A DNA stretch of 64,000 bases, from IMG/VR virus record IMGVR_UViG_3300027708_000012, positions 281,370 through 345,369 of that record, one strand, 5' to 3'. Position numbers and translations under genes: made by a program. Positions 1,651-19,105 of this stretch are shown in pieces (within the stretch, counting starts at the first letter, position 1; each line of letters starts with the position of its first letter). Below the pieces are notes generated by a model. The model was not told the DNA's origin, ran no database searches, and saw only the letters and a list, made by a program, of their open reading frames with translations.

Positions 1651-1679
1651 ATTATACACTCAATATTTAAACAAGTCAA
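1651..1679 (-). promoter_or_regulatory. sigma70-type promoter for the helicase gene
   Basis: TTGACT-17 nt-TATAAT on minus strand. Confidence 0.75.
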
Positions 1680-1683
1680 CCAT

Positions 1684-1707
1684 AAAGAAACCCGCCGAAG
1701 CGGGTTC
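1684..1707 (-). terminator. Rho-independent terminator after tmRNA
   Basis: GAACCCGC-TTCG-GCGGGTTTCTTT on minus strand. Confidence 0.8.
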
Positions 1708-1716
1708 TACTATTTT

Positions 1717-2080
1717 TGGTGACAAAGCATAGTTGCTTCGCGAGGGCAGTTTTTTAGGCTGCTAATGCAAATTCTGCATCATTGGCAGAAGCCAATGTTA
1801 CTGGAACTTGAAAATACTCGAATGTAGATGTTTTAGCATTTACTTTAATTTGCTTGATTTACAGTCATCGCCTACTGAGTTGCCGTCTTCAATATCTAAC
1901 CCCGTCGAAACCATGGCAGGCCCATCATAAACACACTCAAATCTGAAAGGTGTCGCCTGTGACGCCTTGTGTTTATAACACCACCACTCGGGACTCAAAC
2001 CCGCATGTGTTTATGGTGGACCTGGCGGGAGTCGAACCCGCGTCCGAGATTCCTTCTATCCAAAGGAATTACAACTATTT
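1717..2080 (-). ncRNA. ssrA: Circularly permuted (two-piece) tmRNA
   Basis: Minus strand order: acceptor piece ending GCGGGTTCGACTCCCGCCAGGTCCACCA (CCA at 2014), 90-nt spacer, then 5' piece GGGCCTGCCATGGTTTCGACGGG (1923). Acceptor stem GGGCCTG/CAGGTCC has G3.U70. Tag frame ends ANDAEFALAA* at 1754. Confidence 0.92.
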
Positions 2081-2092
2081 CATTTAACCCAA

Positions 2093-2296
2093 TTACTTGG
2101 GTTGAATATTTGCTGCCTGCAAGCCTTTTTGACCTTGTACCACATCAAATGTCACTGATTGATTCTCTTGCAGAACTTTGAATCCTGATGTTTGAATCGC
2201 TGAGTAGTGTGCGAAAAGATCCTCGCCGCCGCCGTCTGGAGTAATAAACCCAAAACCTTTGGTTTCATTAAACCATTTTACTTTACCTGTTGCCAT
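2093..2296 (-). CDS. cspA: Cold-shock domain protein
   Basis: [21 protein letters not shown]...DLFAHYSAI...GLQAANI; RNP1/RNP2 motifs. Confidence 0.95.
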
Positions 2297-2404
2297 TTAC
2301 TTAATTTCCTGTTAAAACACTATTATAGTGTATTTTATTTATCAGAGCAAACATTTTGGCTAGAAAAACTAAATACTAGTACATTAAACACCGGGAGCGA
2401 ATCG

Positions 2405-2995
2405 ATGGCATTAGTCGACTCAGTATTAAATTTAATTAACAAGCAACCAAAAGATCCCAACGCACCAAAGCCTCTAGTAGGATCACGTAGCGAACGTGAA
2501 GCCAAACTAAAAGACAAAGCAGGTATGGTAATCAGTGTATTTGCACTATTACTTGCTGTCAACAGCTGGTACGGTGGCACACTCAGCAGTAAGGTATTAA
2601 ACAATACCATTGCTTCAAACAATGTATGGGCATTTTATCAAGCTAAAAGTATCAAACAAACTCTAGCAGAACAAAGCCTTGACGATGCTACTTATCGCAA
2701 AGAAACAGAAAAAATGGCTAAATTACAAGCCAAGATCGATCGTTACGAAAGCGATCCTAAAACAGGCGAAGGCAAAAAAGAATTAATGGAAAAGGCACGT
2801 GCGTTAGAAGCAGAGCGTGACGAAGCTAAAAAACGTAGCCCATGGATTGGTTATGCCAGTACAATGTATCAATTGAGTATTGTGGTGTTGTCAGCAAGTA
2901 TTCTTGCTGTTAGCATGAGCATGTTCTGGGGTAGCTTCTTTGTTGCTGGTTTAGGTGTATTGTTGTCAGCACAAGGCGTATACTTATTTTTCTAA
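2405..2995 (+). CDS. DUF4337-like membrane protein
   Basis: Start likely ATG 2405 after GGGAG and TAAATA; TM helices with WAFYQAKSIKQ and YQLSIVVLSASIL motifs. Confidence 0.7.
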   Translation: MALVDSVLNLINKQPKDPNAPKPLVGSRSEREAKLKDKAGMVISVFALLLAVNSWYGGTLSSKVLNNTIASNNVWAFYQAKSIKQTLAEQSLDDATYRKETEKMAKLQAKIDRYESDPKTGEGKKELMEKARALEAERDEAKKRSPWIGYASTMYQLSIVVLSASILAVSMSMFWGSFFVAGLGVLLSAQGVYLFF

Positions 2996-3003
2996 TTTAA
3001 AGA

Positions 3004-3106
3004 ACCCACCTTAGGGCACGTTAGTCGTCACGGTTATAGGCGTCCGAGCAATTGAACTGCACCTCGTTAGTGTGCCGGGAGATAAAGTAACTCCCACTTT
3101 TTTGGG
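3004..3106 (+). ncRNA. Candidate structured RNA ending in a terminator
   Basis: GGCACGTTAG...TTAGTGTGCC stem with G-U pairs, internal hairpins, then GGGAG-ATAAAGTAA-CTCCC-ACTTTTTT. Confidence 0.4.
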
Positions 3107-3116
3107 TAAATATATA

Positions 3117-3821
3117 ATGAATCCAATTATATATACCCTGATAGTAACACATATTACTATCGTCTGTGTTACCCTATTTTTACATAGAGGTCAAGCACAC
3201 AAAGGAATAGAATTCCACCCAATTCTAAGTCATTTTATGCGATTCTGGTTGTGGTTAACAACTGGAATGATTACTCGTCAATGGGTAGCTATACATCGTA
3301 AACATCATGTGTTCAGTGATAAGGAAGGCGATCCGCATAGTCCGCATATATTTGGCATTTGGAATATAGTATTTAAGGGTGTTACATTTTACGCTCGAGA
3401 AGGACGTAACGCTCAAACTATGATGAGTTACGGAAAAGGTACTCCTAATGATTGGATTGAACGTAATTTGTATACCCCATATAATTTCTACGGAATTCTT
3501 TTAATGTTGATTATAGATCTTGTATTATTTGGTCTGTGGGGATTAGTAATATGGGGTATACAAATGGTGTGGATACCTTTTTGGGCAGCAGGAGTTATTA
3601 ACGGAATAGGACATTGGTATGGATATCGTAACGGTACTACAAGGGATGGGAGTCGTAACATTAGTAACATTGGCATACTTATTGGTGGCGAAGAGTTGCA
3701 CAATAATCACCACTTGGATCCAGCGAGTGTTAAACTAAGTCGGCGCTGGTTTGAATTAGATATAGGCTGGATGTGGTTAAGTTTATTTAGATTTTTAAGA
3801 CTAGCTAAACTTACACGTTAA
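3117..3821 (+). CDS. Membrane fatty acid desaturase (delta-9/DesA type)
   Basis: His boxes HRGQAH, HRKHH, HNNHH; GEELHNNHH and WFELDIGW; ATG 3117 directly after TAAATA. Confidence 0.92.
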   Translation: MNPIIYTLIVTHITIVCVTLFLHRGQAHKGIEFHPILSHFMRFWLWLTTGMITRQWVAIHRKHHVFSDKEGDPHSPHIFGIWNIVFKGVTFYAREGRNAQTMMSYGKGTPNDWIERNLYTPYNFYGILLMLIIDLVLFGLWGLVIWGIQMVWIPFWAAGVINGIGHWYGYRNGTTRDGSRNISNIGILIGGEELHNNHHLDPASVKLSRRWFELDIGWMWLSLFRFLRLAKLTR

Positions 3822-3822
3822 C

Positions 3823-4581
3823 TTATAGATTACTTGCGTATTTTGTTGCTGTTGGAGCACGTTTAGCGGCTTGTACTTTGGCATTAGCTGGTCTTTCAAA
3901 CTTGTGTGTCCATGCTCTACTGGCGGCATCTGCACTAGGGTACTCTCGTCCTATATATCTTGCACCGTCTGGCTCGGATAATGCAAAATCAATTTGTCCT
4001 TGCCAGTTATCTTTCCAACTTGGACCTAATTTTTGTTTTAATTGCGCAAATCGAGGACCGTTATGTTGAAATAATCCTCCACTAGGTAAGCCGTTAGAAT
4101 CAATAGTTTCAACTCCTGATCTAAAGCCAGACTCGTGTGCTATGTTAGCCATCATGCCTGCAATCTGTGTTATGCTCATATTCCATTTTTGTTTGCAATG
4201 ACGAGCGATATCCCGCCAAGGAACAGAACCTGCAACTTGTTTAATTTCAACTTTAGGTTTAGCTACTGGCGGCGCCTTTGCTGTTTGTACTGGTGGCAAG
4301 GATTTAGGCTTGGCCGCTGGTGTAGCAACTGCTGTTGCTTTGGCTTTTGCAATATCTGCAGGACCAGTCATTCTTGTGTCAACGCCCGGAGGGCCAAATG
4401 GTGCTCTGCTAGGTATAGATTTTGGATCTAGTTTACCTGATCCTATTTTAGCAATATCGTCTTCTGCTTCTAGTGCATCAGCAAACTGTTGAGCTGGCGA
4501 ATTAGTTTTTGGTGCTAGGCCTTTAGCTTGTAACAGATTGTCTAAATCGTCTTCTTTAATAGTAAATTCGTTTGCTCTCAT
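3823..4581 (-). CDS. Phage tail lysozyme (Phage_lysozyme2-like) domain protein
   Basis: AGMMANIAHESG...GLFQHNGPR...QIDF...FERPA. Confidence 0.8.
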   Translation of the reverse strand: MRANEFTIKEDDLDNLLQAKGLAPKTNSPAQQFADALEAEDDIAKIGSGKLDPKSIPSRAPFGPPGVDTRMTGPADIAKAKATAVATPAAKPKSLPPVQTAKAPPVAKPKVEIKQVAGSVPWRDIARHCKQKWNMSITQIAGMMANIAHESGFRSGVETIDSNGLPSGGLFQHNGPRFAQLKQKLGPSWKDNWQGQIDFALSEPDGARYIGREYPSADAASRAWTHKFERPANAKVQAAKRAPTATKYASNL

Positions 4582-5618: not shown

Positions 5619-6263
5619 TTACTTCCCCAATAGGCTATCAACCTTTGCTTCAGCAATGTCTAAACGAGCTTCGATAGCATCTAATGCTGGATCTGCTGGA
5701 ACTGCAACTGCTTCAACAACTTGTTGAACTACTTCTGGAGCAACTTCTTCACCTGTTGCGGCTGCAATAACTTCAGCAACTGCGTCAGCGGCAGCTTGTG
5801 CTACTTCTGGAGCTGGCGTTGGCATGTCAGCAACTGCGGCGATGATAGCGGCTGTGATTGCCACTGGATCAACTACAACTTCTGGCTCTGCTACAACAAC
5901 TGCCATAACTGCGGCTGAAACAATATCAGCAACTTCTGAGTGCTCAACTGGTTCTGCTTCGTACTGTGCTGTAACAACATCAGCAACTATGTCAGCGGCT
6001 TCTGCATGATCGGCACTTGGAGATAGTGCAACTACTTCTTCAACTTCAAAAGGTGCATCATTTGCTACGGCAGCAATGATAGCATCAATGTGAGCTTCTG
6101 TTTTTTCGGCAATTAAGTGATCAACTTGAACTTCAACTAGAGACAATCGTGCGTCTAGTTCTTCGATGCTTGTGGCATTGTCTGTATTAACTGATGTACC
6201 AGTTAGTGTTGCTAACTTGGCTTCTACGGAAACTAATCTTGCGGCTAAATCTTCTAATCTCAT
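5619..6263 (-). CDS. Acidic Ala/Val/Glu-rich protein with three short coiled-coil repeats
   Basis: LxARLxxxE(A/V)(K/Q)(L/V)xxL three times; AAGGAG RBS. Confidence 0.75.
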   Translation of the reverse strand: MRLEDLAARLVSVEAKLATLTGTSVNTDNATSIEELDARLSLVEVQVDHLIAEKTEAHIDAIIAAVANDAPFEVEEVVALSPSADHAEAADIVADVVTAQYEAEPVEHSEVADIVSAAVMAVVVAEPEVVVDPVAITAAIIAAVADMPTPAPEVAQAAADAVAEVIAAATGEEVAPEVVQQVVEAVAVPADPALDAIEARLDIAEAKVDSLLGK

Positions 6264-6346
6264 GTGATGCTCCTTAAGGGTTATGAGTGTGTACCACTAC
6301 GGCACACATCTATTTAAGTGATAACCGATTACAGCAGTATTACAAG

Positions 6347-7057
6347 TTAACTCCAATATCGATTATGGTATAAACTATCCCAGTAGGCTTTGTTATTGCG
6401 ATTGATAAAATTCTTAACAAGGTACTTGCCCATGCCAAGGTATCCCATCTTTTTAAATCTACGCGAGTCTTGCCCAAGGTGGTGGCGAACAATCCTAAAC
6501 TTCCTAGGATTGTATTTTTTAGATAAAAAGTAATCTTCACTTGTTAATAAGTTCTCAGGAAACCCGCCGTACTCTTCAAACTTATCTCTGCGTGTGAGCA
6601 TAAACGCACCGACCGCAAATGGACTAAAGAATTTTAGCGTATGGTTAATTAAATTAAATGCTGTGAATCCAATCTTTGCCCTAATATCCTTATCATAGCA
6701 TTTGATATTCAATCCAATAAGGTCTAGTTTTTTACGTTCAATTAATCTAACAGCATCACGAATAACAGTGGGTTTAAAAAATCGTACATCAGCATCAATG
6801 AATAAGATATAAGGTGTAGTGACTAGTCTAGCACCATTGTTTTTAGCAATACTAACAGGGCCGCCATCGATAATTTCTACATTTAAGTTACCCTTCATCA
6901 ATTGAATAACTTCACGTGTATTGTCCGTTGAACAGTCTGCAATGATGATTCTAGTGCTACCTATCATTTGATTGCGTAGGTGTGTTAATAGATAGGGAAT
7001 ATAGTTTTCCTCATTCTTACAAGGAATTACAATAGTAATCTTATCGCTGAATATCAT
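6347..7057 (-). CDS. Glycosyltransferase family 2
   Basis: TIVIPCKNEE, IIADCSTDNT, LFIDADV, SEDYFLS motifs. Confidence 0.9.
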   Translation of the reverse strand: MIFSDKITIVIPCKNEENYIPYLLTHLRNQMIGSTRIIIADCSTDNTREVIQLMKGNLNVEIIDGGPVSIAKNNGARLVTTPYILFIDADVRFFKPTVIRDAVRLIERKKLDLIGLNIKCYDKDIRAKIGFTAFNLINHTLKFFSPFAVGAFMLTRRDKFEEYGGFPENLLTSEDYFLSKKYNPRKFRIVRHHLGQDSRRFKKMGYLGMGKYLVKNFINRNNKAYWDSLYHNRYWS

Positions 7058-7224
7058 TGTTTCTTGCATTCGCCTACTACCTTAAAACTTTTAAACTTTA
7101 GTTGCCACTTCAATGTGCTTAGGACTTGCTCGCAAGTCTTTTGATCGTGGAATGTTAGTTCTACTTTTCCTGGCTGATCCGTCGGATCGTTTACGTGTAT
7201 CGCTATTAGGATCAATAACCACAT
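7054..7224 (-). CDS. Small exported protein (56 aa)
   Basis: MWLLILIAIHVNDPTDQPGKVELTFHDQKTCEQ...GECKKQ*; AGGAG RBS; ATGA overlap with GT2. Confidence 0.6.
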   Translation of the reverse strand: MWLLILIAIHVNDPTDQPGKVELTFHDQKTCEQVLSTLKWQLKFKSFKVVGECKKQ

Positions 7225-7978
7225 TGTCTTTCTCCTGTGTCCATGTAACTATCTCCCAAGTACCGTTATGATGTTCTACTAGGGCTGTACAACTTTCAAC
7301 CCAATCGCCATCATTCATATAAACAACATCATCTATGTTTTTAATTTCAGCATGATGTATGTGCCCGCATATAACACCATCAAAGCCACGCTTTTTACAA
7401 TATCCAGCAAGGTTCTTTTCAAAGTGGAACATAAAGTCCACAGCTTTCTTTACTCGCTTCTTAAGGTACTGACTAAGGCTAAAGTACCCAAAACCAAAGC
7501 GATGGCGTAGCCAATTGAACTTGCTATTAATCGATAAAATGACATCATATGCTTTGTCTCCTAAAAATGCTATCCACGGTGCTAGTCTAGTAATGCCATC
7601 AAACAAGTCACCGTGTGTAACTAAGTAATGATTGCCGTCAGCACCTATGTGTTCTATTTGATTGTGTATCTCAACGAGTCCAAAACTGAATCCATAAGGA
7701 ATCATTGGTCTTAAAAATTCGTCGTGATTTCCTGCAATATAAACGACACGAGTACCACGTTTAGCATGACCGAGAACACGACGCACCACATTAGTGTGGC
7801 TCTGTTTCCATCTCCATTTATTTTGTTGGATTCGCCAGGCATCAATTATATCTCCTACAAGGTATAGGGTATCACAAGAGTTGTGTTTAAGAAAGTTGTT
7901 TAACTTATCTGCTTGACAATCCCTTGTGCCTAAATGCACATCACTAATGAAAATGCTACGATAAGTTTTGGTTTCCAT
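7091..7978 (-). CDS. Metallophosphoesterase, PlcP/LpxH-like phospholipase C
   Basis: FISDVHLG, LVGDIID, GNHDEFLR, HGDLFD, GHIHH, GDWVESCTALVE motifs. Confidence 0.88.
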   Translation of the reverse strand: METKTYRSIFISDVHLGTRDCQADKLNNFLKHNSCDTLYLVGDIIDAWRIQQNKWRWKQSHTNVVRRVLGHAKRGTRVVYIAGNHDEFLRPMIPYGFSFGLVEIHNQIEHIGADGNHYLVTHGDLFDGITRLAPWIAFLGDKAYDVILSINSKFNWLRHRFGFGYFSLSQYLKKRVKKAVDFMFHFEKNLAGYCKKRGFDGVICGHIHHAEIKNIDDVVYMNDGDWVESCTALVEHHNGTWEIVTWTQEKDNVVIDPNSDTRKRSDGSARKSRTNIPRSKDLRASPKHIEVATKV

Positions 7979-8022
7979 ACCATTATTTATCGTAGCATTA
8001 TGTATGCAATATTACAAGAGCG

Positions 8023-8181
8023 TTACACTTGTACTACTGTCCACTTGTGTGTGAATGGTTTGCCTTCGGCCTTGTGTTTCAAGATTTTGGCGAACTCTTT
8101 CAAGCGAAGTTCGTATTGTTTCTCGGCATCGTGGTCGACGCAAGCCTTGTACAGTTTAGCTATTAGCTTTTTCTGTTTCAT
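8023..8181 (-). CDS. Small hypothetical protein (52 aa)
   Basis: [30 protein letters not shown]...; GGAGG RBS. Confidence 0.6.
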
Positions 8182-8201
8182 GGTTGTGTCCTCCTTGATA
8201 G

Positions 8202-8801
8202 TTATTTATTCGCTAACGGATTATCAACCGCTTGTTTAATCTTGTTATCAACTTCTGCTCTTAACGCACGAATCTCAGCTTGTTGTTCTTTTTGATTCTT
8301 AACCAACTCGCGATTGATATCTTTTAGTGTAGCATCAACATCACGCTTGATTTCTTTCACAGTGCCATCGACATCGCGCTTAATTTCCTTCATTCCTGAA
8401 TCTGTTAGTCGTTGATCTGTTTTACTTGAACGCTCAACATTTTCAACAACAGCTTCTAGTCTGCGAACATCGCCTTTAAGATCGTTCTTGATGTTGTTGG
8501 TATACTCGGTCATCTTGCTAGTATTGGCATCCAACACTTCCATCTTTTTATAGATTTCAGCAAGATCAGGTGTAACATATTCCGCAATCTTTTTCTTCAT
8601 CCCCATGTAGTCTTTATACACCTCAAAGCACCCATAAAGCCCGCCCAATAATGATGACGCTAGGGTGAATGCTACCATAAGTTTGGCTGGTGTGAATTCA
8701 TAACCACCAATACTGATAACAGTATCTTTGCTGGCATACTTTTTTACAGCCGCTTCAGCTTCGTCTATTTTTGCATTGACGTCTTTAATTTCTTCTGTCA
8801 T
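8202..8801 (-). CDS. Single-TM coiled-coil protein
   Basis: One hydrophobic helix then heptad repeats ending DNPLANK. Confidence 0.8.
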
Positions 8802-8802
8802 T

Positions 8803-10893
8803 TTACTCTCCTTGCTTATATTGCATGTCTACCATTCTTTTATGTAGGCTATCGCTACTCATTTGTCGCAGTACTTGTACGTTGTCTATGACTTTTTGGC
8901 CTTTATAAACTTCTTTAGGTTCATAAAAAGCCGTATCTCTTAATACAAACGAATATGCTTCAAATCCTCTTGGTTGTGTAGCCATTGATGCAAGATCAAC
9001 ACCTGCGGCTAGATCGTTTGGTTGTACATTTCTATTAACTGTACTTGTCTGTGACTGTATATTTTCTTGCATTAACTCAAAACGCTGTTGCATCATCATT
9101 TCTGACAATGGATTGCCAGCCTTACCCATGCCGCCAAAACTAGCAACTTGCATTGGTGGTGTTTCTACTTCCATAATACGTTCTTGTAATCGTGGCTGAT
9201 ATACAGGTGCGGTTTGTGTAGGTGCTGGACTTATACTAGATAAATTTAATGACCCTAGTGGATTGTAGGCAAACGGATTTCGACTAACTGTTAATCCTGT
9301 ACCACTACTGGCTTGTTGTTGGGATTCTGTTGCTGCAGGTGCTGTAGGTTTTAACATAGCTACTGATGTTGACTGTGTTTCTTGTTGTGCTTGTTGCGGT
9401 GGTGTATATGCAGCTTGTTGAATCTGTACAACACTTCCATTAGATTGTTGTTGTACTTCTTGTTGTACTTCTTGTTGTACTTGTTGTACTACACGACTAG
9501 TCTGTTGCTGTTGCGTAGTAGTCTGTTGCTGTTGTTGCGTATTTTGACTTGTTTGAATTGCGGTCTGCTGGCTAGCTTGTGTATTTTGACTGGAGAACTG
9601 TGCGGCTGCTGTGGCACTGTTAGCACTCATATCTTGATTCATACTGATTGCAAGATTACTAGCGGCTTGTGAACTTTGTTGGGTATTTTCAAATGCTTTG
9701 GCAGCATTTTGTACGGCTGATTGTTGTATTGCTTGTTCTTTGGCCTGTGCTGATTTGACCACACTCATTGCTAATTTGCTAGGGCCACCTCCGCTGGTTG
9801 CAGAGCCTGCTTGTTGTGGGCCTGCCTGACTTGGTCCAGCACTTGGTGGAGGTGCAGATTGTGCTACTTGAGGAGGACCGCCGGCTGGTTGAGGTTGTGT
9901 TGGTGCAGGCCCAGCTTGTTGCGGGCTAGGCTGTGCCGGATTATCTTGTGCTACCGCAGGATTTTGATTTGGATCTTGCCCCGGTTGCTGAGTTGGTAGT
10001 CCTTGTTGTGCAGGTGCTTGCTGTGCAGGTTGTTGTGCTTGCTGTTGTGGACTTGCTTGAGCTAATGCAGGTGCCGCATCGGCTACAGCAGGGGGTGCCG
10101 CCGCTGGTGCAGGTGATGTATAGTTCATTGCAGGTACAAATGAAGTAGCACTTGCATTTGAAACTGTAGATCCTAGTATAGAATTTTTAACAGTAGCTAA
10201 AGCGTATCCTGGGCAAGTAGGACTTGATAATGGGTCGTTTATACACGGATCGGGCTTTACTGTATATTTCAAGCTAAAATTAACATTAATAATTTCTGGA
10301 CCATAATTGCCAGCCCAATAATTATTGTCTCGGCCTACAAAGCCTACCTGTGCATTACTAAAGCTAGTTGCTGGTACAGGACTAGAAAAAGTTTCACTGA
10401 AGTTAAAGTTAGTCCAGTTATATTTCCTATTTGTTTGACTAGTATAATCATAGTTTGCTGCTAGTCCTCCACCGCTATTATAGAACTTAACATACGCACC
10501 TAAATAATCTTGACGTCCATCATCCCAGCCGTTGCCGTTCTTAGCAGTAAACCCGAAATTAAATCCTCCAAGTTGTACACCACTTCCGCCTATAGACAAT
10601 GCCTTGTTTATACTGACAATTTGATTTAAGTCTGTAGTGCCGTATGAATAGTTAATAACACCATCTGGTCTTATACTTGGTTTAGGACCACAGTTACCAG
10701 CCTGACCGGCCTGGAAGCACAGTGTATTAACATAGACACCGTTGTTCCAAATGCTAGTCGTATCTGTAGGCGCAGTACCGTTATTAATTAAATTACCGGT
10801 AGTAGCGTCTACTTGAGCATTAGTGGAAGCCGAATATACGATAAGCAATAACGCCCAGTATACTACCGATACCAACTTTCTTATAAGTGTCAT
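8803..10893 (-). CDS. Exported protein with beta-sandwich domain and Gln/Pro-rich linker
   Basis: Signal-peptide-like N-terminus; DPCINDPLSSPTCPGY motif; long Q/P/A/S low-complexity region. Confidence 0.8.
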   Translation of the reverse strand: MTLIRKLVSVVYWALLLIVYSASTNAQVDATTGNLINNGTAPTDTTSIWNNGVYVNTLCFQAGQAGNCGPKPSIRPDGVINYSYGTTDLNQIVSINKALSIGGSGVQLGGFNFGFTAKNGNGWDDGRQDYLGAYVKFYNSGGGLAANYDYTSQTNRKYNWTNFNFSETFSSPVPATSFSNAQVGFVGRDNNYWAGNYGPEIINVNFSLKYTVKPDPCINDPLSSPTCPGYALATVKNSILGSTVSNASATSFVPAMNYTSPAPAAAPPAVADAAPALAQASPQQQAQQPAQQAPAQQGLPTQQPGQDPNQNPAVAQDNPAQPSPQQAGPAPTQPQPAGGPPQVAQSAPPPSAGPSQAGPQQAGSATSGGGPSKLAMSVVKSAQAKEQAIQQSAVQNAAKAFENTQQSSQAASNLAISMNQDMSANSATAAAQFSSQNTQASQQTAIQTSQNTQQQQQTTTQQQQTSRVVQQVQQEVQQEVQQQSNGSVVQIQQAAYTPPQQAQQETQSTSVAMLKPTAPAATESQQQASSGTGLTVSRNPFAYNPLGSLNLSSISPAPTQTAPVYQPRLQERIMEVETPPMQVASFGGMGKAGNPLSEMMMQQRFELMQENIQSQTSTVNRNVQPNDLAAGVDLASMATQPRGFEAYSFVLRDTAFYEPKEVYKGQKVIDNVQVLRQMSSDSLHKRMVDMQYKQGE

Positions 10894-12187
10894 CTTCACT
10901 CACCTCTGTTTCTTTTGGTAATTTTTCTGGATTTGATTCCCACTCTACTTTAGCTTGGGCTCCAATCTTACCTTCGTACGGGCATGGTGTGCCTGCTGCC
11001 ATCATAGCATCAAATACACGACGATCTTGACACATAGTAGCAACTGCGGCAACTTTCATCCCCATGTCGTATAATGTCTTGCTTAATTTTAATCGTTCAC
11101 AATTCATATCACGAACTGTGCCGCCTGAACTAACACCAAAGATTTGTGTTTGTACTGAACCGCTTGTGCCTGTTGTACATAGGTCAGCATTACCACCTGA
11201 CATCATTGCTGGTGCAACGGCTGTTGGTGGAGGTTGAATAACACGCTGAGTAATATCACTTGTATTAACATTGTTATTTGTCATTGAACCACTGTTAATA
11301 TTCTGATTAACGTTATTATTTGCATTAGTACTTGTACTAGCATTAGTATTATTATTGTTATTGGTCATTGTACCGTTATTGGTATTCTGATTAATATTAG
11401 TCATCGTTCCTGTGTTAATATTGTTATTAGTATTGCTAGTAGTAGCTGTTGTAGTGTTGATATTACGATTGGTCATATCACCTGTATTAACATTATTATT
11501 TGTGTTAACACTGGTACTCGTATTAACATTGTTGTTATTGTTAGTCATTGTACCATACTGGTAGTTAGTATTGGTGCTTGTACTAGTGTTAACATTGTTG
11601 TTATTGTTAGTATTAACACTAGTGCTAGAACTAACATTATTATTGTTATAAGTCATTGTACCTGAATTAATGTTATTATTGGTGTTGACATTATTGCTAG
11701 TACTTGCGCTGACATTGTTGTTATTGTACGTCATTGTACCAGTATTAATATTGTTATTGGTGTTAACATTATTGCTAGTACTGGTACTTGTATTGACATT
11801 GTTGTTATTGTTAGTCATTGTACCTGTATTAACATTATTATTATTAAATGTCTGAGTACCGCTATTAACGTTATTGTTGTTATTAGTGTAGGTTACTGCG
11901 CCACTCATAACGTTGTTATTGTTATTATTGTTGGTCATAGTACCACTATTAACGTTATTGTTGTTATTAGTGTTAGTTGTACCGCCACTTAGCACAGTAT
12001 TATTATTTGTAGTTGTAGTACCGCTATTAACATTATTTGTGTTAATTGTACTTGTGCTAACGCTTGTACTATTAGTATCTACGAGACTTTTAGAATCGTA
12101 GCCGCCTTGGTTAATCACAGTTTGAGGTAGCACGGTGGTGCTTGATAGTACCAACATTAATGCTGGCATTATATTTTTAATACGCAT
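10820..12187 (-). CDS. Exported Asn/Thr-repeat protein with Cys-containing C-terminal domain and TM anchor
   Basis: Signal-like N-terminus; repeats NNNNVN(S/T)GTMT; PPPTAVAP...CERLKLSKTL...GTPCP; C-terminal hydrophobic helix. Confidence 0.85.
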   Translation of the reverse strand: MRIKNIMPALMLVLSSTTVLPQTVINQGGYDSKSLVDTNSTSVSTSTINTNNVNSGTTTTNNNTVLSGGTTNTNNNNNVNSGTMTNNNNNNNVMSGAVTYTNNNNNVNSGTQTFNNNNVNTGTMTNNNNNVNTSTSTSNNVNTNNNINTGTMTYNNNNVSASTSNNVNTNNNINSGTMTYNNNNVSSSTSVNTNNNNNVNTSTSTNTNYQYGTMTNNNNNVNTSTSVNTNNNVNTGDMTNRNINTTTATTSNTNNNINTGTMTNINQNTNNGTMTNNNNNTNASTSTNANNNVNQNINSGSMTNNNVNTSDITQRVIQPPPTAVAPAMMSGGNADLCTTGTSGSVQTQIFGVSSGGTVRDMNCERLKLSKTLYDMGMKVAAVATMCQDRRVFDAMMAAGTPCPYEGKIGAQAKVEWESNPEKLPKETEVSEDDTYKKVGIGSILGVIAYRIFGFH

Positions 12188-12247: not shown

Positions 12248-12934
12248 TTATTTTTTGAATTCTATTATTGCGGATTTTACCAAGCTATCAATACTGTTTA
12301 TTAATGGGATTTCTTGATATTGTTTTTCTCTGACAACTAATGGTATTTCTGTACAGCCTAAAACCACAGCTTGCGCACCTTTTTCAATTAACGATTTAAC
12401 CACAGTCATCAGCATGCCATGTGCTAATATAGGCTTGTTTGCTTTGATCAAATCTATTCCAGGCTGAACATAGTCTTCCATTTCTTTGCTAGTTGGTGTT
12501 ATGCAAGTCCATCCTAATTTGGACAAATGATTGTTATATAAGCCTAGTTGCATTGTAGCCCTAGTTCCCATTACACCAATAGTACCAGTTATGTTTTGAG
12601 CTCGTAATTCATCTGCTACACTATCTACAATATGCGTAATTGGCACACCTAGTGCTGTTAATCTGTCATACCAAAAATGTGCTGTATTGCAAGGAATTAC
12701 AATGTGATCGCAATCTGCATTTTTTAAACCTTGTATCCCACGTTTAAGTTTTTCCCAAGGCAAATCGTCTTTGTTGAGTAAACTTGTACTACGATCTGGA
12801 ACTGTAGGATCACTCCATAGTATTACTGGAATATGTTCTTGATCGCAGGTTGCTGGAGTTTGTTCAGTTAGGCGTACTAGGAATTCTGCACTGGCCGCTG
12901 GCCCCATTCCACCAAGTACACCTAGGCGTTTCAT
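12248..12934 (-). CDS. Aspartate/glutamate racemase
   Basis: GVLGGMGP, IPCNTAH, LGCTEIPL; both catalytic Cys present. Confidence 0.92.
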   Translation of the reverse strand: MKRLGVLGGMGPAASAEFLVRLTEQTPATCDQEHIPVILWSDPTVPDRSTSLLNKDDLPWEKLKRGIQGLKNADCDHIVIPCNTAHFWYDRLTALGVPITHIVDSVADELRAQNITGTIGVMGTRATMQLGLYNNHLSKLGWTCITPTSKEMEDYVQPGIDLIKANKPILAHGMLMTVVKSLIEKGAQAVVLGCTEIPLVVREKQYQEIPLINSIDSLVKSAIIEFKK

Positions 12935-13536
12935 TTTTTATTGTATAGTAAACTGGATGCCACTATCATAACAGTCTGTGCCATCTCAATATCTGAAGGT
13001 TTTTCCTTCCATCCGACACTAATTTGCCCGATAAACAAACCTGGTTCTGCTGGAACACTTATGCGACACATGTAGTTTACACCAGATGCTTTATAAGTAA
13101 ATCCAATATAGCTTTGAGGTCTGTTATAGTCTGCACAGGGAATTTTGCCTGACATTAGACCAATAACATCTTCATTGTTATTTAGATTTTTCGTTAACAG
13201 GCCAACATCTGCACCGTCGTGAGTTTTATCATGGCCGCCACTACGACTGGTTAAGTAAGTTAATTTTCTAGTGTTAAGCACAGTATTAACTTCAAACAAT
13301 GCTACTAGTTCTGCATCTGTATTTTTCAGTATAAAGTTTGCGGCTTCTTCATACTTGCCATTCATTTTGGGTAGTGCTTGTTGAGCACGATAACTGGCCA
13401 TAAAGTTATCTTTTTCGCTGTATACGATCCAGCCTCCAAAAGTAAGGAGGCATAGAAACACAACCGTAAATAGGCGAAAAGGACTTTCGCCTATGAACTT
13501 CAATAGTTCAAGCAGGAACTCTTTCAGCTTGTCCAT
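12931..13536 (-). CDS. Single-TM protein with periplasmic GAF-like domain (T4 holin T-like)
   Basis: N-terminal TM, two Cys, YMCRISVP...FIGQISVGW resembles holin T C-terminal domain. Confidence 0.5.
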   Translation of the reverse strand: MDKLKEFLLELLKFIGESPFRLFTVVFLCLLTFGGWIVYSEKDNFMASYRAQQALPKMNGKYEEAANFILKNTDAELVALFEVNTVLNTRKLTYLTSRSGGHDKTHDGADVGLLTKNLNNNEDVIGLMSGKIPCADYNRPQSYIGFTYKASGVNYMCRISVPAEPGLFIGQISVGWKEKPSDIEMAQTVMIVASSLLYNKK

Positions 13537-14788
13537 GGTCCACGTCTGCTACAAATGCTGTTACACCCATATTACCAATAACATGGCTGGCTGTGCGAAT
13601 CATATCCATTAGAGGATCAACAGCAATAAACAAGACCAATACTGCTTCGCTTGGTAGTTTTAACAAGTCACAAACAACTGCCACTGTAGCCACTGTTAGA
13701 ATACCTGTAGTACCTGCACTTGCTAGTCCTGCTAAAATGCTACCAAGCAATATAACAATCAATCCACTGGCACCTAATGATAAATCATAAATGCCAGCAA
13801 TAAACGCTGTGGCAATGGCATAGTAAACAATACTTCCAATACGGTTAACAGTAAAGCTCAAGGGAGTAGTTAGTTCTACGGCATCTTTATTATAGCCTAG
13901 TTTAACTAAAGCTTCTTGGCTGTAAGGAATACAAGCTAGGCTTGAACGACTACTAACAGCAATCATAAATGTTTCTTGTATGCCATGCATTGTGTCTATA
14001 ATACTCTTGCGAGATTTCCAGGCAATATATGCTGTAGCAATAGCAACAATAATAAATCCGCCCACAGTCTGCTGAATAATAAAATCAACCATAGTACCAA
14101 AAATGCCTACGCCTACCTTGGCTACTTGTGTTGATATCATGGCAAATAGTGCAATTGGTAAGAAGTAGTTTAAGAACTTGAAAATACTAATACTGGCCTG
14201 TTGGACACTTTTGAAGATATCAATCATAACTTCTTGTCCCACAGACTTTATGTTGCCCAGGGCAATACCGAAGATTAAACAGAAAATAACAATCTTAAGA
14301 CTTTCACCAGATTCTAAACTTTGAAAGATATTTTCTGGAATAAACTTCTGTATCATTGCACCAGCACTTGGCTTAGGTACAACTAGCATTGGCTCTTTTA
14401 GTGTAATTGACATTTCGGTCCCTTGGTCTTTGTTGTTGACCAATGCACCAAGTTGTACTTTCTTTTCGGGAGTCATTTCGCTGCCAGTTAATACTGTCGA
14501 ACCAACGCCAACGACAGAAGCCATGAACATACTAACAACAAAGCCAATGACAATCTTTTTAATCATCGACTGGCTACCTTCTTTCTGTAGCAGTCCAACT
14601 ACACCAACTAGAATAGTGGCAAATAAGAAAGGTAATACAACAACCTTTAATAAACTGATGTAGATACTACCAATAGATTCTAATGCCATAACTTCGTGAG
14701 GCAAATATACCCCGCCAGCTACAGCCAACAGAATACTGCCTAAAATAGTCCAAGGACTAGCTAAAAATTTCTTTATATCGATTTTCAT
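13508..14788 (-). CDS. Dicarboxylate/amino acid:cation symporter (DAACS/GltP family)
   Basis: About 9 TM; IPENIF, SSRSSLA, AVDPLMDMIRTASHVIGN motifs. Confidence 0.9.
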   Translation of the reverse strand: MKIDIKKFLASPWTILGSILLAVAGGVYLPHEVMALESIGSIYISLLKVVVLPFLFATILVGVVGLLQKEGSQSMIKKIVIGFVVSMFMASVVGVGSTVLTGSEMTPEKKVQLGALVNNKDQGTEMSITLKEPMLVVPKPSAGAMIQKFIPENIFQSLESGESLKIVIFCLIFGIALGNIKSVGQEVMIDIFKSVQQASISIFKFLNYFLPIALFAMISTQVAKVGVGIFGTMVDFIIQQTVGGFIIVAIATAYIAWKSRKSIIDTMHGIQETFMIAVSSRSSLACIPYSQEALVKLGYNKDAVELTTPLSFTVNRIGSIVYYAIATAFIAGIYDLSLGASGLIVILLGSILAGLASAGTTGILTVATVAVVCDLLKLPSEAVLVLFIAVDPLMDMIRTASHVIGNMGVTAFVADVDHGQAERVPA

Positions 14789-15606
14789 TTGTTTTCCTTG
14801 TATCTATTCATTAATTTTTTAACATCGATGTCACGGTATTCACTGGAAATGACAAAGTTAGCAATGCCTAATAATTGTAAGCAATTGGGTCTAACAGCCA
14901 CGCCAATTTGATCTACGCTGTCACTAATTGTGATTGTTTTTGTAGTCAAGGCCGCTTCAGGTTTTTCAAAACTAATTTTCTTAATTTCAAACTCGTCACG
15001 ATAAGCGGCATTAATTTTACCACTTGTAACATTTGCTATGACCACGCCCCAGTCATCTTCTGGTAAGAATGTAGCTTTGGGAAAGTTGATACGAGCATAA
15101 GTGTCGTAGCTGGAGTTACGTATAAAACTAATCTTACCATTGAAGTCTCGAATAACTTCATAAGGTTCACGTCCTTTAGTATTCTGACTTAACCAAAGAC
15201 GATTGATAATTATGCTTTGTTTTAGTGTTACATAAGGAGCACTGAATCTCAATGCTTGTAGTCGAGGTCCGGTAATACTTAATTTGCTAATAGCAATGTC
15301 AGCACGACCATCGCGAACTTGTTCTGCCACTTCAGCAAAGCTGGCAGCATCTCTACGGAATTCTACTGGCACGCCTAGTTGTTTGCCAATGCTACGAGCA
15401 ATGTCAACATCTAGTCCGTGTAGGTTATCGTCCTTACCACTAAAGAATGGAGGACTGTCTTTGCCGTTCATGGCCACCACTAATTTGCCTGCTTTTTTAA
15501 TAGCGGCAATGTCAGTGGGCAAAGGAACTTTAGAGTCGGGCATTTGTGCATAGCTAGGAAGTATAGCTAACACGCTGAATGTTAAGGATATTAGTAAGTT
15601 TTTCAT
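14785..15606 (-). CDS. Amino-acid substrate-binding protein (SBP family 3)
   Basis: Signal peptide; PPFF...GLDVDIARSIG..LGV; GRADIAIS..SIT.PR...FSAPY. Confidence 0.9.
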   Translation of the reverse strand: MKNLLISLTFSVLAILPSYAQMPDSKVPLPTDIAAIKKAGKLVVAMNGKDSPPFFSGKDDNLHGLDVDIARSIGKQLGVPVEFRRDAASFAEVAEQVRDGRADIAISKLSITGPRLQALRFSAPYVTLKQSIIINRLWLSQNTKGREPYEVIRDFNGKISFIRNSSYDTYARINFPKATFLPEDDWGVVIANVTSGKINAAYRDEFEIKKISFEKPEAALTTKTITISDSVDQIGVAVRPNCLQLLGIANFVISSEYRDIDVKKLMNRYKENK

Positions 15607-15701
15607 AGCAGTATTTATACTATGAAAATAAATTAAACTATCGTATTATTACAGTGATATTACTATAGTTTAAGGGTGTTGGAAAATTGACACCTTAGAA
15701 A

Positions 15702-17584: not shown

Positions 17585-18265
17585 TTATGCTATTTCAGGG
17601 AACAAGCAATCCTGTATGAAAACCTGTACATCCTCTTCACTAAGCCCTAAGCTAACCATAACTTTAGGAGTATGTGGGTTTTTCTTCTGATTCTCACAAT
17701 AGTAATTCTGAGCGTCAGTAGTATTAGGATGTGTACGTTCGGTTTCTTTTACTGTGGCCAAATAGTGTGTTAGATTCTTACGGGCCATGGCAAGTATTTG
17801 CTCTAGTTCTGCTTCATCGCTGACATTTCCCGCGGCCACCATAGAACCTGTAAAAATACGCTCTGCCCAATCTGGTAACTTGCGAGTTTTATTCCACTCT
17901 AGACGACGAGCTTCTTCAGCAAACCAATCAATCATCGGATGTTCGCTGTCGCCTGCAGGACTAAAATCATGGAAACAGCCTGTGATTTTATTTTTACCAG
18001 CTACAACATCAAATCCAAAGATAGGTGCAGGGTTATCTGTATGCGGGAAAATACAGCAATGCATCATCCATAGACCTTTAGTCTCGCGGGCATCAACTAC
18101 ATCAATATGAGCCCTACGATAAGCACTACTTGTCCAAACTTTGTTTACCCAACCTGGTTGATTAAAACGTTCCATACCAGGCTCTTGAATAATACTACCA
18201 GTTGCATACAACTGACTTTCAAAGTATTCTTCAATTTTAATTAGTGTGTCCCAGACATTACTCAT
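17585..18265 (-). CDS. Ferredoxin-dependent bilin reductase (PcyA/PcyX-like)
   Basis: RRAHIDVVD, MMHCCIFP, PIFGFDVVAG, DFSP, RKLPDWA, QNYYCENQKKNPHT motifs. Confidence 0.88.
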   Translation of the reverse strand: MSNVWDTLIKIEEYFESQLYATGSIIQEPGMERFNQPGWVNKVWTSSAYRRAHIDVVDARETKGLWMMHCCIFPHTDNPAPIFGFDVVAGKNKITGCFHDFSPAGDSEHPMIDWFAEEARRLEWNKTRKLPDWAERIFTGSMVAAGNVSDEAELEQILAMARKNLTHYLATVKETERTHPNTTDAQNYYCENQKKNPHTPKVMVSLGLSEEDVQVFIQDCLFPEIA

Positions 18266-18806
18266 CTTTATACTCGACAATTTCCATCATTTGTTGGAAG
18301 AACCTTGTGGCGAAATCAAAACATACTTTAGCTTCGTCTGCCATGTCGTCGCTTATACGTTCTCTAATAGCTGCCTTAAGTGCTTCAGGATCTTCAAATT
18401 GGTACATGGTGCCCGACCCAGGAACACGTTTGGCAATCATCTGTCCACCAGCTAGATCACCCATGTGTCGCACATATAAGTGCGCCATTAGTTTTTTTGG
18501 ATTATCTCTGATACTCATGATATAATCCATATATTCTTGGACTATAGGAAGTAGTTCTGCATCGTCCTCATCTGTCCATAGTTCTTTATAGTCCGCATTA
18601 ATTTTTGGTGCTCTGCGAATATCAGGCATGCCGGCCAGCATACCGGTTGCCATAGCACACACTTCTAGTATCTCATATTGCGGATGTTGATTTTTTAAAT
18701 AAGTTGCATACAGTTTAGGATTTATTGTGCCTGAAAACAAAATTTTTACAAATTCCTGTCTTTCAGCATTGGTATGCGCTTCTTTAGTTAAATCTCGTAA
18801 GCTCAT
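18258..18806 (-). CDS. hemO: Heme oxygenase
   Basis: LRDLTKEAHTNAE; AHLYVRHMGDLAGGQMI; EAKVCF. Confidence 0.92.
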   Translation of the reverse strand: MSLRDLTKEAHTNAERQEFVKILFSGTINPKLYATYLKNQHPQYEILEVCAMATGMLAGMPDIRRAPKINADYKELWTDEDDAELLPIVQEYMDYIMSIRDNPKKLMAHLYVRHMGDLAGGQMIAKRVPGSGTMYQFEDPEALKAAIRERISDDMADEAKVCFDFATRFFQQMMEIVEYKDE

Positions 18807-19105
18807 TCTTCCTCCAATTTAATTTGGAGAGGAAAATTATTTTCTCTAGCTGTAGATGTTGTTTCTACGGCCTTAGCCTCGGCAATTTCAAAACTATAAA
18901 TTCCCGCTACTCCACTTCCAGTCTCGTGAATTTGAAGCATAATGTCTCTGGCCGAATCAGTTGAATGCCTAAAGATATTGGATAAAATTGATATCACAAA
19001 CTCCATCGGGGTTACATCGTCATTAAGTATAATGACCTTCCAACGTTTTGGTTCACTGATTACTACTTTAATTTTCTCGTCAATTGCGATATCTGTACTT
19101 GACAT
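18803..19105 (-). CDS. clpS: ATP-dependent Clp protease adaptor ClpS
   Basis: WKVIILNDDVTPMEFVI...MLQIHETGSGVAGIYSFEIAEAK...FPLQIKLE. Confidence 0.95.
   Translation of the reverse strand: MSSTDIAIDEKIKVVISEPKRWKVIILNDDVTPMEFVISILSNIFRHSTDSARDIMLQIHETGSGVAGIYSFEIAEAKAVETTSTARENNFPLQIKLEEE

Follow-up and report, generated by a model that had tools for sequence, protein, structure and literature searches.

Why would a large bacteriophage carry an amino-acid uptake operon beside a gene resembling a holin, and do the genes of such a locus act together? The question was raised by a first-pass annotation of a 64,000-nucleotide stretch (hereafter the window; positions 281,370 to 345,369 of the 345,369-bp virus record IMGVR_UViG_3300027708_000012), which described four overlapping genes for an amino-acid-binding protein, a DAACS symporter, a holin-T-like protein and an Asp racemase, following a single TAAATA promoter with an upstream AGTAAT-N5-TGTAAT repeat, and without an ABC permease or ATPase. 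It proposed either a binding-protein-assisted secondary transporter for scavenging D/L-Asp/Glu or a D-amino-acid sensing circuit linked to lysis timing. The observation was confirmed in the present analysis, whereas its interpretation was only partly supported: the transporter alternative is backed by comparative genomics, but the proposal that all four genes form one functional circuit is not supported.

Gene content, upstream motifs and genomic context

Four co-directional minus-strand open reading frames were identified at 14785-15606 (273 aa, PF00497 SBP_bac_3, E 2e-19; hereafter the SBP), 13508-14788 (426 aa, PF00375 SDF, E 1e-63), 12931-13536 (201 aa, a single-pass membrane protein with no Pfam family but a match to phrog_31287, E 8e-19; hereafter the TM protein) and 12248-12934 (228 aa, PF01177 Asp_Glu_race, E 2e-39), which overlap by 4, 29 and 4 nt. 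A T4-type late-promoter-like motif, TATAAATA, lies at 15612-15619(-), 5 nt before the SBP start codon. The count of this motif is no higher than chance, with 5 copies in the window against 6.2 expected, but its placement is not random, as all 5 window copies are on the coding strand just upstream of gene starts and 13 of the 18 copies in the whole genome lie within 60 nt upstream of an ATG open reading frame. Further, [T/C]ATAAATA or a one-base variant such as TTAAATA or CTAAATA sits 5-7 nt before the SBP start in most of about 30 sister loci whose upstream genes differ. The AGTAAT-N5-TGTAAT direct repeat is present upstream of this motif at 15648-15664(-) and is kept in about five closely related loci, but GTAAT-N5-7-GTAAT occurs 7 times in the genome against 5.75 +/- 2.5 expected, i.e. 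not above chance, so that a role as a regulator site is possible but unproven. A generic scan for sigma-70 promoters and terminators was at chance level, and the predicted fold of the 99-nt leader RNA was not significant (z = -1.65). Metatranscriptome matches were limited to a few exact 151-nt pieces without strand or 5'-end information, too sparse to show transcript ends or to exclude DNA carry-over.

The virus record is 94% complete and encodes a T4 Gp23-type capsid protein (E 2e-80) and a permuted tmRNA, and the sequence was found in freshwater metagenomes. The genome is that of a T4-like freshwater jumbo phage, of which the window is the end and whose host is probably a proteobacterium (Alpha- or Betaproteobacteria). 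A blastn search of the region against GenBank phages returned no match. Profile searches of the entire 345-kb genome revealed no ABC permease (PF00528) and no ABC ATPase (PF00005) above the Pfam cut-off, and no ABC genes were seen beside the cellular SBP-SDF pair at locus L200, although a host-encoded partner cannot be excluded.

To determine whether the gene order was a peculiarity of this genome, viral contigs were searched with the TM protein and, separately, with the SDF. The order SBP-SDF-TM-racemase was found in most of 57 loci recovered with the TM protein, while among loci recovered with the SDF, all 69 with room have the TM gene downstream and 59 of 64 have the racemase, despite flanking genes that differ between loci. 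Absence of co-occurrence in other genomes, together with the lack of a GAF or holin fold in the TM protein, had been named beforehand as grounds for rejecting the interpretation, and neither was observed.

A divergent SDF clade paired with a binding protein

The SBP carries an N-terminal signal peptide and matches PF00497 at 70 bits, but gave only weak NCBIfam hits to cystine, Lys/Arg/Orn and Gln binding proteins, and signal-peptide-like N-termini ending A-Q were seen in all orthologues. The SDF protein matches its family profile over essentially the full length (215.7 bits against a cut-off of 27.9, profile positions 3-385 of 387), with PDB profile hits to aspartate transporters at E 3e-38. 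It is, however, divergent: in alignment to solved aspartate transporters the NMDGT motif of TM7 is replaced by NRIGS, and D..DxxRT..N..GD by D..DMIRT..H..GN, such that two Na+-site aspartates are lost. The TM8 Asp and Arg that bind the alpha-amino and acidic side-chain groups of the substrate are kept, with D..DMIRT aligning to D..DMART of the aspartate transporter 9bgz. The same signature, generalised as x-R-[FIY]-G, is found in cellular relatives, in which the motif reads CRFG, GRFG or FRFG, whereas canonical alphaproteobacterial SDFs keep NMDGT or NLDGT. A word-indexed homologue search with the phage SDF returned only the phage clade, and Protein Atlas entries for the SDF and the racemase gave generic family names only.

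Among 301 sampled Alphaproteobacteria, 12 SDF loci of this clade were found, and an SBP homologue lies directly upstream in 8 of these and within 2.3 kb in 10, compared with none of 30 canonical NMDGT/NLDGT SDF loci (Fisher p = 4e-6). In bacteria, SBP orthologues at 30-42% identity lie upstream of the SDF. In four of four further genomes, comprising Magnetospirillum fulvum, two probably cyanobacterial genomes (a Lyngbya-type contig and GCA_000380225.1) and a Pseudomonadales MAG, an SBP_bac_3 gene abuts or overlaps the SDF; one also has an Asp_Glu_race gene, on a probably cyanobacterial contig, and one has a PALP enzyme closest to beta-hydroxyaspartate dehydratase. One alphaproteobacterial MAG has the SBP (41% identity), the SDF (36%) and a convergent racemase that scores 267 bits on the CuyB model, in a clearly chromosomal context, and the TM protein query found no match anywhere in that genome. 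None of the cellular modules examined shows the holin-like gene.

The racemase and its replacement in sister phages

The racemase belongs to the PLP-independent two-cysteine group containing CuyB (cysteate racemase) and aspartate racemases (PF01177, 135.8 bits), and C82 (PCNTAH) and C194 (GCTE) are invariant in 12 orthologues. It scores 216.9 bits on NCBIfam NF052483 racemase_CuyB against a cut-off of 190, compared with 159 bits on TIGR00035, and ten orthologues score 211-227 bits. The first-pass naming as an Asp racemase is refined, in that NCBIfam places the protein in the CuyB equivalog rather than with generic Asp racemases, although the closest solved structures are the aspartate racemases 3s7z and 1jfl. 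A search for CuyA/PALP enzymes returned one sub-threshold hit in the phage, and none lies beside the alphaproteobacterial module, so that a cysteate pathway would need host genes. In sister phages the racemase is replaced by a D-amino-acid-dehydrogenase-like (DadA-like) enzyme (NF009074, 431-434 bits), which points to D-amino-acid handling.

The holin-T-like protein

The TM protein has a short N-terminal helix, one transmembrane helix and a large periplasmic GAF-like C-terminal domain with two conserved cysteines, and its best structural matches in the PDB are the T4 holin T periplasmic domain, as the first-pass annotation had suggested. The resemblance does not extend to sequence: there was no Pfam hit, no PF11031 match in the genome and an hhalign probability of only 6% against T4 T, and a profile of the TM family searched against PDB sequences gave only noise. 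No canonical PF11031 holin was found either in the T4-like Cronobacter phage S13, which carries a relative. No endolysin was found near the gene, and neither of the two endolysin families searched for, T4 lysozyme (PF00959) and GH108 (PF05838), was found in the genome. Distant relatives, however, lie directly next to a GH108 endolysin, a Phage_lysozyme, a GTA_holin_3TM gene and a weak LysC hit, while another lies one small gene downstream of a gp38-like tail-fibre gene and near Peptidase_M23, and another two genes from a lysozyme. Two sister phage lineages carry the TM gene alone, at 63-71% identity, and these solitary copies are nested inside the cassette clade. The idea that the TM protein is an integral part of the bacterial module was rejected. 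A co-fold of SBP, SDF and TM protein gave a score of 0.00 without contacts, which counts neither for nor against an interaction.

Interpretation of the locus

The explanation we favour, with a probability of roughly 0.58, is that three of the four genes form an auxiliary metabolic module captured from bacteria. In this view, the secreted SBP binds an acidic alpha-amino acid in the periplasm, with aspartate, cysteate or beta-hydroxyaspartate as candidates, and hands it to the divergent DAACS-fold carrier, after which the cytoplasmic racemase interconverts D and L forms so that host enzymes can use the compound for carbon, nitrogen, sulfur or nucleotide precursors during infection. The SBP-carrier pair may be an undescribed kind of binding-protein-dependent secondary transporter. 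The fourth gene would be the phage's own holin-T-like lysis gene, with the uptake genes having been inserted directly upstream of it, between it and the late-promoter-like motif, such that all four would be transcribed together late in infection. The gene content and order, the fold, the conservation, the clade-specific SBP-SDF pairing and the placement of the motif were established by the analysis, whereas the substrate, the binding and transport activities, the dependence of the carrier on the SBP, the activity of the racemase and the direction of racemisation, the hole-forming and lysis activity, and the time of expression (from a motif alone) are inferred. In particular, the dependence of the carrier on the SBP rests only on gene neighbourhood, and the unbroken SDF-TM adjacency, in 69 of 69 loci, is more than a purely incidental insertion would predict.

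That adjacency counts in favour of two rival readings, both of which appear unlikely. The secreted SBP, free or ligand-bound, could bind the periplasmic GAF-like domain of the TM protein, as antiholin RI binds T4 holin T, such that the availability of a D/L acidic amino acid outside the cell would delay or trigger lysis; the SBP and the domain are both periplasmic, and T4 holin T is regulated through exactly this domain (T-RI complexes 6psk, 6px4 and 6pxe). Beyond adjacency, however, there is no evidence for a link between amino-acid sensing and lysis timing, and a functional link between uptake and lysis is neither shown nor excluded. Alternatively, and least likely of all, the TM protein could be a small membrane subunit that docks the SBP onto the SDF, analogous to TRAP DctQ or TTT TctB, given the strict gene order and overlapping reading frames in this phage clade and the tripartite nature of known SBP-dependent secondary transporters. 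Against both stand the cellular SBP-SDF pairs examined, none of which has such a protein, the phage lineages that keep the TM gene alone, and the relatives that lie without any transporter next to endolysins or in plain lysis cassettes.

The remaining alternatives concern the uptake genes themselves. A dedicated cysteate system, in which L-cysteate is imported and racemised to D-cysteate for a host D-cysteate sulfo-lyase (CuyA) to yield pyruvate, ammonium and sulfite, is possible but doubtful: all 11 phage racemases tested and the cellular one pass the CuyB cut-off, the characterised Bilophila wadsworthia cluster pairs an SDF transporter with CuyB (PMC11193023), and a TauE sulfite exporter adjoins one close cellular racemase relative, but the phage scores are only 20-35 bits above the cut-off, there is no CuyA/PALP gene above the cut-off in the phage or beside the alphaproteobacterial module, one cellular pair adjoins the beta-hydroxyaspartate-dehydratase-like enzyme instead, and the DadA-like replacement fits generic D-amino-acid use. 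It also appears improbable that the SBP and SDF are functionally independent neighbours, with the SBP serving a host ABC transporter or a chemosensory or cyclase pathway and the SDF being an ordinary ion-coupled carrier. All characterised DAACS carriers work without binding proteins, the SBP resembles ABC-type amino-acid binding proteins, and Cache/adenylate-cyclase genes adjoin three of the cellular pairs; however, the pairing is clade-specific, is kept across Alphaproteobacteria, Gammaproteobacteria, probable cyanobacteria and phages with overlapping stop and start codons, lacks ABC genes in the phage and beside the pairs examined, and involves a carrier that has lost Na+-site residues. A more far-reaching combination, which is not excluded but is improbable on present evidence, is that the SBP-SDF pair is a third, undescribed class of binding-protein-dependent secondary transporter and is, in these jumbo phages, also wired to lysis, with the GAF domain reading the SBP or its ligand, for example D- or L-acidic amino acids released from neighbouring lysed cells, and setting lysis timing much as T4 lysis inhibition works through holin T and RI.

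If the SBP-SDF pair works as a unit, the DAACS fold, one of the best-studied elevator carriers, would join TRAP and TTT as a third scaffold for binding-protein-dependent secondary transport, and the replacement of the NMDGT Met by Arg with loss of Na+-site aspartates gives a directly testable idea of how ion coupling was traded for SBP coupling. Ecologically, this would be a phage that brings a self-sufficient uptake-plus-conversion route for acidic, possibly D-, amino acids or cysteate into its host. For lysis biology, the TM protein enlarges the T4 holin T architecture to a wide, sequence-unrecognisable family present in many non-T4 phages, with hole formation inferred.

Relation to known systems

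Literature searches for SBP-dependent DAACS carriers and for phage aspartate racemase auxiliary genes returned nothing relevant among the searchable papers. As in the TRAP (DctPQM) and TTT (TctABC) transporters, a periplasmic binding protein is encoded with an elevator-type secondary carrier for organic or amino acids and no ATPase, but the membrane part is a DAACS/SDF protein rather than DctQM or TctAB, the binding protein is SBP_bac_3, the class used by ABC amino-acid systems, rather than DctP, TAXI or Bug, and no small membrane subunit is present in the cellular versions. Relative to the canonical DAACS carriers GltPh, GltTk, GltP and DctA, the PF00375 fold, the HP1 serine-rich motif and the substrate-binding TM8 residues are kept, while NMDGT becomes x-R-[FIY]-G, the equivalents of Asp312, Asn401 and Asp405 (GltPh numbering) are replaced, the TM3-TM4 loop contains an insertion, and an SBP gene lies upstream at the frequencies given above. 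The Bilophila wadsworthia cysteate cluster (SDF transporter, CuyB racemase, CuyA sulfo-lyase and RidA; PMC11193023) likewise encodes an SDF-family transporter with a CuyB-family racemase, but here CuyA and RidA are missing and an SBP is added. In comparison with T4 holin T and its antiholin RI, there is no detectable sequence similarity, the conserved cysteine pair sits at different positions and no RI-like partner was identified. Finally, as with phage-encoded auxiliary metabolic genes such as cyanophage PstS, a host-derived periplasmic binding protein is carried to raise nutrient uptake in the infected cell, but in this case the phage brings the carrier and a downstream enzyme as well, and so would not rely on a host membrane component.

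Genomic context of the cassette and its promoter region

The four genes lie within the last 64 kb of a 345,369-bp IMG/VR virus record, estimated to be 94% complete, which encodes a T4 Gp23-type major capsid protein (E 2e-80) and for which the public runs holding the sequence are freshwater metagenomes. The four minus-strand ORFs, which overlap by 4, 29 and 4 nt, encode an SBP_bac_3 protein (14785-15606), an SDF/DAACS carrier (13508-14788), a 201-aa protein with no Pfam family (12931-13536) and an Asp/Glu-family racemase (12248-12934). No ABC permease, and no ABC ATPase above the cut-off, was found in the phage genome. The window also holds a ribonucleotide reductase and, at 1663-2106 (-), a permuted (two-piece) tmRNA gene found by ARAGORN and, in Rfam, as tmRNA_permuted (125.9 bits) and beta_tmRNA (106 bits), which hints at an alpha- or betaproteobacterial host. 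Just upstream of the cassette, at 17585-19105 (-), lie a heme oxygenase, a ferredoxin-dependent bilin reductase (together a PcyX/PebS-like two-gene cassette) and a ClpS-like ORF, and the hemO/bilin reductase pair is also near the cassette in several sister loci. Directly downstream, at 8803-12187 (-), are two large secreted low-complexity proteins with no Pfam family, one Asn/Thr-rich (455 aa, phrog_20531) and one Gln/Pro-rich (698 aa), and relatives of the first recur near the cassette in many sister loci.

The motif TATAAATA lies 5 nt before the SBP start codon. The number of copies of this motif is at chance level, but their placement is not, as all five copies in the window sit on the coding strand just upstream of gene starts, and 13 of 18 copies in the genome lie within 60 nt upstream of ATG ORFs. 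In about 30 sister loci with unrelated upstream genes, [T/C]ATAAATA or a one-base variant was found at the same distance from the SBP start, and solitary copies of the 201-aa gene in one sister lineage also have TATAAATA upstream. In a Gp23-type phage this is best read as a T4-type late promoter, although this reading is an inference from the motif and its placement rather than from mapped transcripts. Both at 15607-15619 and genome-wide, TATAAATA often ends only 4-7 nt before the ATG with no Shine-Dalgarno sequence, possibly indicating that late mRNAs of this phage are leaderless or nearly so. The AGTAAT-N5-TGTAAT repeat described in the first-pass annotation is present at 15648-15664, but is not enriched in the genome (7 occurrences against 5.75 +/- 2.5 expected) and is conserved only among close relatives.

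Predicted structure and genomic context of the 201-aa protein

The 201-aa protein has more than 600 metagenomic relatives and belongs to a family of about 200-aa proteins extending down to 20% identity, in which C134 is invariant and C157, P162 and G170 are nearly so. An AlphaFold model built on the alignment of this family is confident (pLDDT 94.7) and comprises an N-terminal helix, a transmembrane helix at residues 19-40 and an alpha/beta domain at residues 58-201. A Foldseek search with this model returned the T4 holin T periplasmic domain (E 1e-5, TM 0.67-0.70 normalised to the target) among many GAF domains. Sequence-based methods did not detect this relationship, with no hit to PF11031 and an hhalign probability of 6%.

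One relative lies 3 nt after a GH108 endolysin, one overlaps a following Phage_lysozyme gene, one abuts a GTA_holin_3TM gene, one follows a weak LysC hit, and one lies two genes before a lysozyme. A further relative lies one small gene downstream of a gp38-like tail-fibre gene and two genes before a Peptidase_M23, close to where t lies in T4, directly after gene 38. The T4-like Cronobacter phage S13 (KC954775.1) has no PF11031 holin T match but does have a 27%-identical relative of the 201-aa protein, annotated as hypothetical, at 3908-4489 of locus L006 between gp24 and the RNase H region, which is a candidate for its missing holin. The protein was therefore interpreted as a holin-T-like lysis protein, its predicted architecture and fold matching those of holin T, with the qualifications that it is not demonstrably a member of the PF11031 family and that lytic activity is inferred rather than shown.

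Distribution of the cassette among phages

Among 57 IMG/VR loci found with the 201-aa protein, most carry the SBP, SDF, transmembrane (TM) protein and racemase genes in that order, while the flanking genes vary. Among loci found with the SDF, the TM gene follows in all 69 with room, the SBP precedes wherever there is room, and the racemase is present in 59 of 64. In at least three contigs the racemase is replaced by a protein closest to D-amino-acid dehydrogenase, an FAD enzyme scoring 431-434 bits against NF009074, just under the cut-off of 494. Examples of this replacement are at 7687-8862 of sister phage locus L029 and 1585-2760 of sister phage locus L138, with an unknown 234-aa protein lying between this enzyme and the holin-like gene in L138. 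In several loci (L013 at 7600-7665, and also L014, L016, L022, L031, L040 and L002) a conserved hydrophobic mini-ORF of about 20 aa lies between the holin-like gene and the racemase, overlapping both by ATGA, and is absent from the window, where the two genes overlap directly. One very large viral contig (IMG/VR contig 3300027749_002876, 524,565 bp) holds two copies of the cassette (loci L105 and L133) about 190 kb apart, which could represent either a true duplication or an assembly that joins two related phages.

Two groups of loci carry the TM gene alone, one next to DNA polymerase B and the other between T4-type RNase H and an RNA ligase. In a maximum-likelihood tree, with the endolysin-adjacent relatives serving as outgroup, these solitary copies are nested inside the cassette clade with strong support, which requires at least two changes of state.

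Association of SBP_bac_3 and SDF genes in bacterial genomes

To trace the origin of the racemase, one genome per species was scanned with the racemase alignment, which identified relatives at 42-56% identity, mostly in Acetobacteraceae or Rhodospirillales and some in Alcaligenaceae. One of these loci, in an alphaproteobacterial MAG, carries an SBP (41% identity) and an SDF (36%) convergent with the racemase, in a chromosomal context containing Mfd, an acyl-CoA dehydrogenase and a histidine kinase. A search of that genome with the TM protein found no match. The MAG's SDF shares the unusual motifs of the phage carrier, and when aligned to solved aspartate transporters the NMDGT motif reads NRIGS in the phage and CRFG in the MAG, while the TM8 motif keeps D..D..RT but loses the Asn and the final Asp.

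A search of 301 Alphaproteobacteria with the MAG's SDF gave 12 loci of this clade, in which an SBP homologue (30-42% identity to the phage SBP) lies directly upstream on the same strand in 8 and within 2.3 kb in 10. All but two of these loci carry an Arg at the Met position, and none has the Asp. As a control, none of 30 canonical NMDGT/NLDGT SDF loci from the same class has an SBP homologue within the same flank (Fisher p = 4e-6). In three alphaproteobacterial genomes (L200 at 5764-7992, L245 at 1748-4027 and L246 at 7286-8458) a dCache/HAMP/adenylate-cyclase membrane sensor lies next to, or between, the SBP and SDF genes, which could potentially indicate that the pair also feeds a signalling pathway.

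Named relatives of the clade occur in Magnetospirillum, Microvirga, several cyanobacteria, Pseudomonadales and Paenibacillus, and all four neighbourhoods that could be read have SBP_bac_3 abutting or overlapping the SDF. In the two probably cyanobacterial genomes (L286 at 2696-3829, inferred from neighbouring genes, and a Lyngbya-type contig) the paired SBP is fused to an N-terminal PG_binding_1 (peptidoglycan-binding) domain, which would tether it to the cell wall. Of the four neighbourhoods, one has a convergent Asp_Glu_race gene and one has a PALP enzyme closest to beta-hydroxyaspartate dehydratase, and the TM7 signature holds across these loci. No description of SBP-associated DAACS carriers was found in the searchable literature, although this is not proof that none exists. 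The SBP-SDF pair is bacterial and clade-specific, and this cross-phylum pairing, which lies partly outside the framing of the first-pass annotation and is the most interesting outcome of the analysis, may define a new kind of binding-protein-dependent secondary transporter.

Relationship between the uptake module and the holin-like gene

The arrangement of four overlapping genes proposed in the first-pass annotation was confirmed. Its interpretation was supported in part, with support for the structural prediction of a holin T/GAF fold and for the alternative of an SBP-assisted secondary transporter, while the alternative of a sensing circuit for lysis timing remains speculation. The best-supported explanation is that a bacterial SBP-SDF(-racemase) uptake module was inserted in front of a late-transcribed holin-like gene of a T4-like phage lineage. 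In this view the gene order, the clade-specific pairing and the placement of the promoter-like motif are shown by the sequence comparisons, whereas late transcription, lytic activity, SBP-assisted transport and the substrate are inferred.

A merely positional link between the uptake genes and the holin-like gene is favoured by the absence of the latter from cellular modules, by the existence of solitary copies and by the presence of relatives in ordinary lysis cassettes. A functional link is favoured by the SDF-TM junction, which is never broken although everything around it varies. A co-fold of the SBP, SDF and TM protein scored 0.00, a result that is evidence neither for nor against an interaction. 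Lake metatranscriptome runs hold a few exact 151-nt pieces of the racemase, SDF and SBP genes, which is compatible with expression but does not prove it.

Predicted substrate and comparison with characterised systems

The TM8 Asp and Arg of the carrier align with the residues that, in GltPh-type transporters, bind the alpha-amino group and the acidic side chain of the substrate. The racemase has both catalytic cysteines, and its closest solved relatives are aspartate racemases. In all 11 phage copies and in the cellular neighbour it passes the NCBI equivalog cut-off for the cysteate racemase CuyB. The alternation between a racemase and a D-amino-acid-dehydrogenase-like enzyme suggests that a D-form is involved, as substrate or as product. 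These observations lead to the conclusion, inferred from sequence, that the substrate is an acidic alpha-amino acid, namely Asp, cysteate or beta-hydroxyaspartate, without distinguishing between the three. The characterised cysteate cluster of Bilophila wadsworthia likewise pairs an SDF transporter with CuyB (PMC11193023), although no CuyA above the cut-off was found in the phage.
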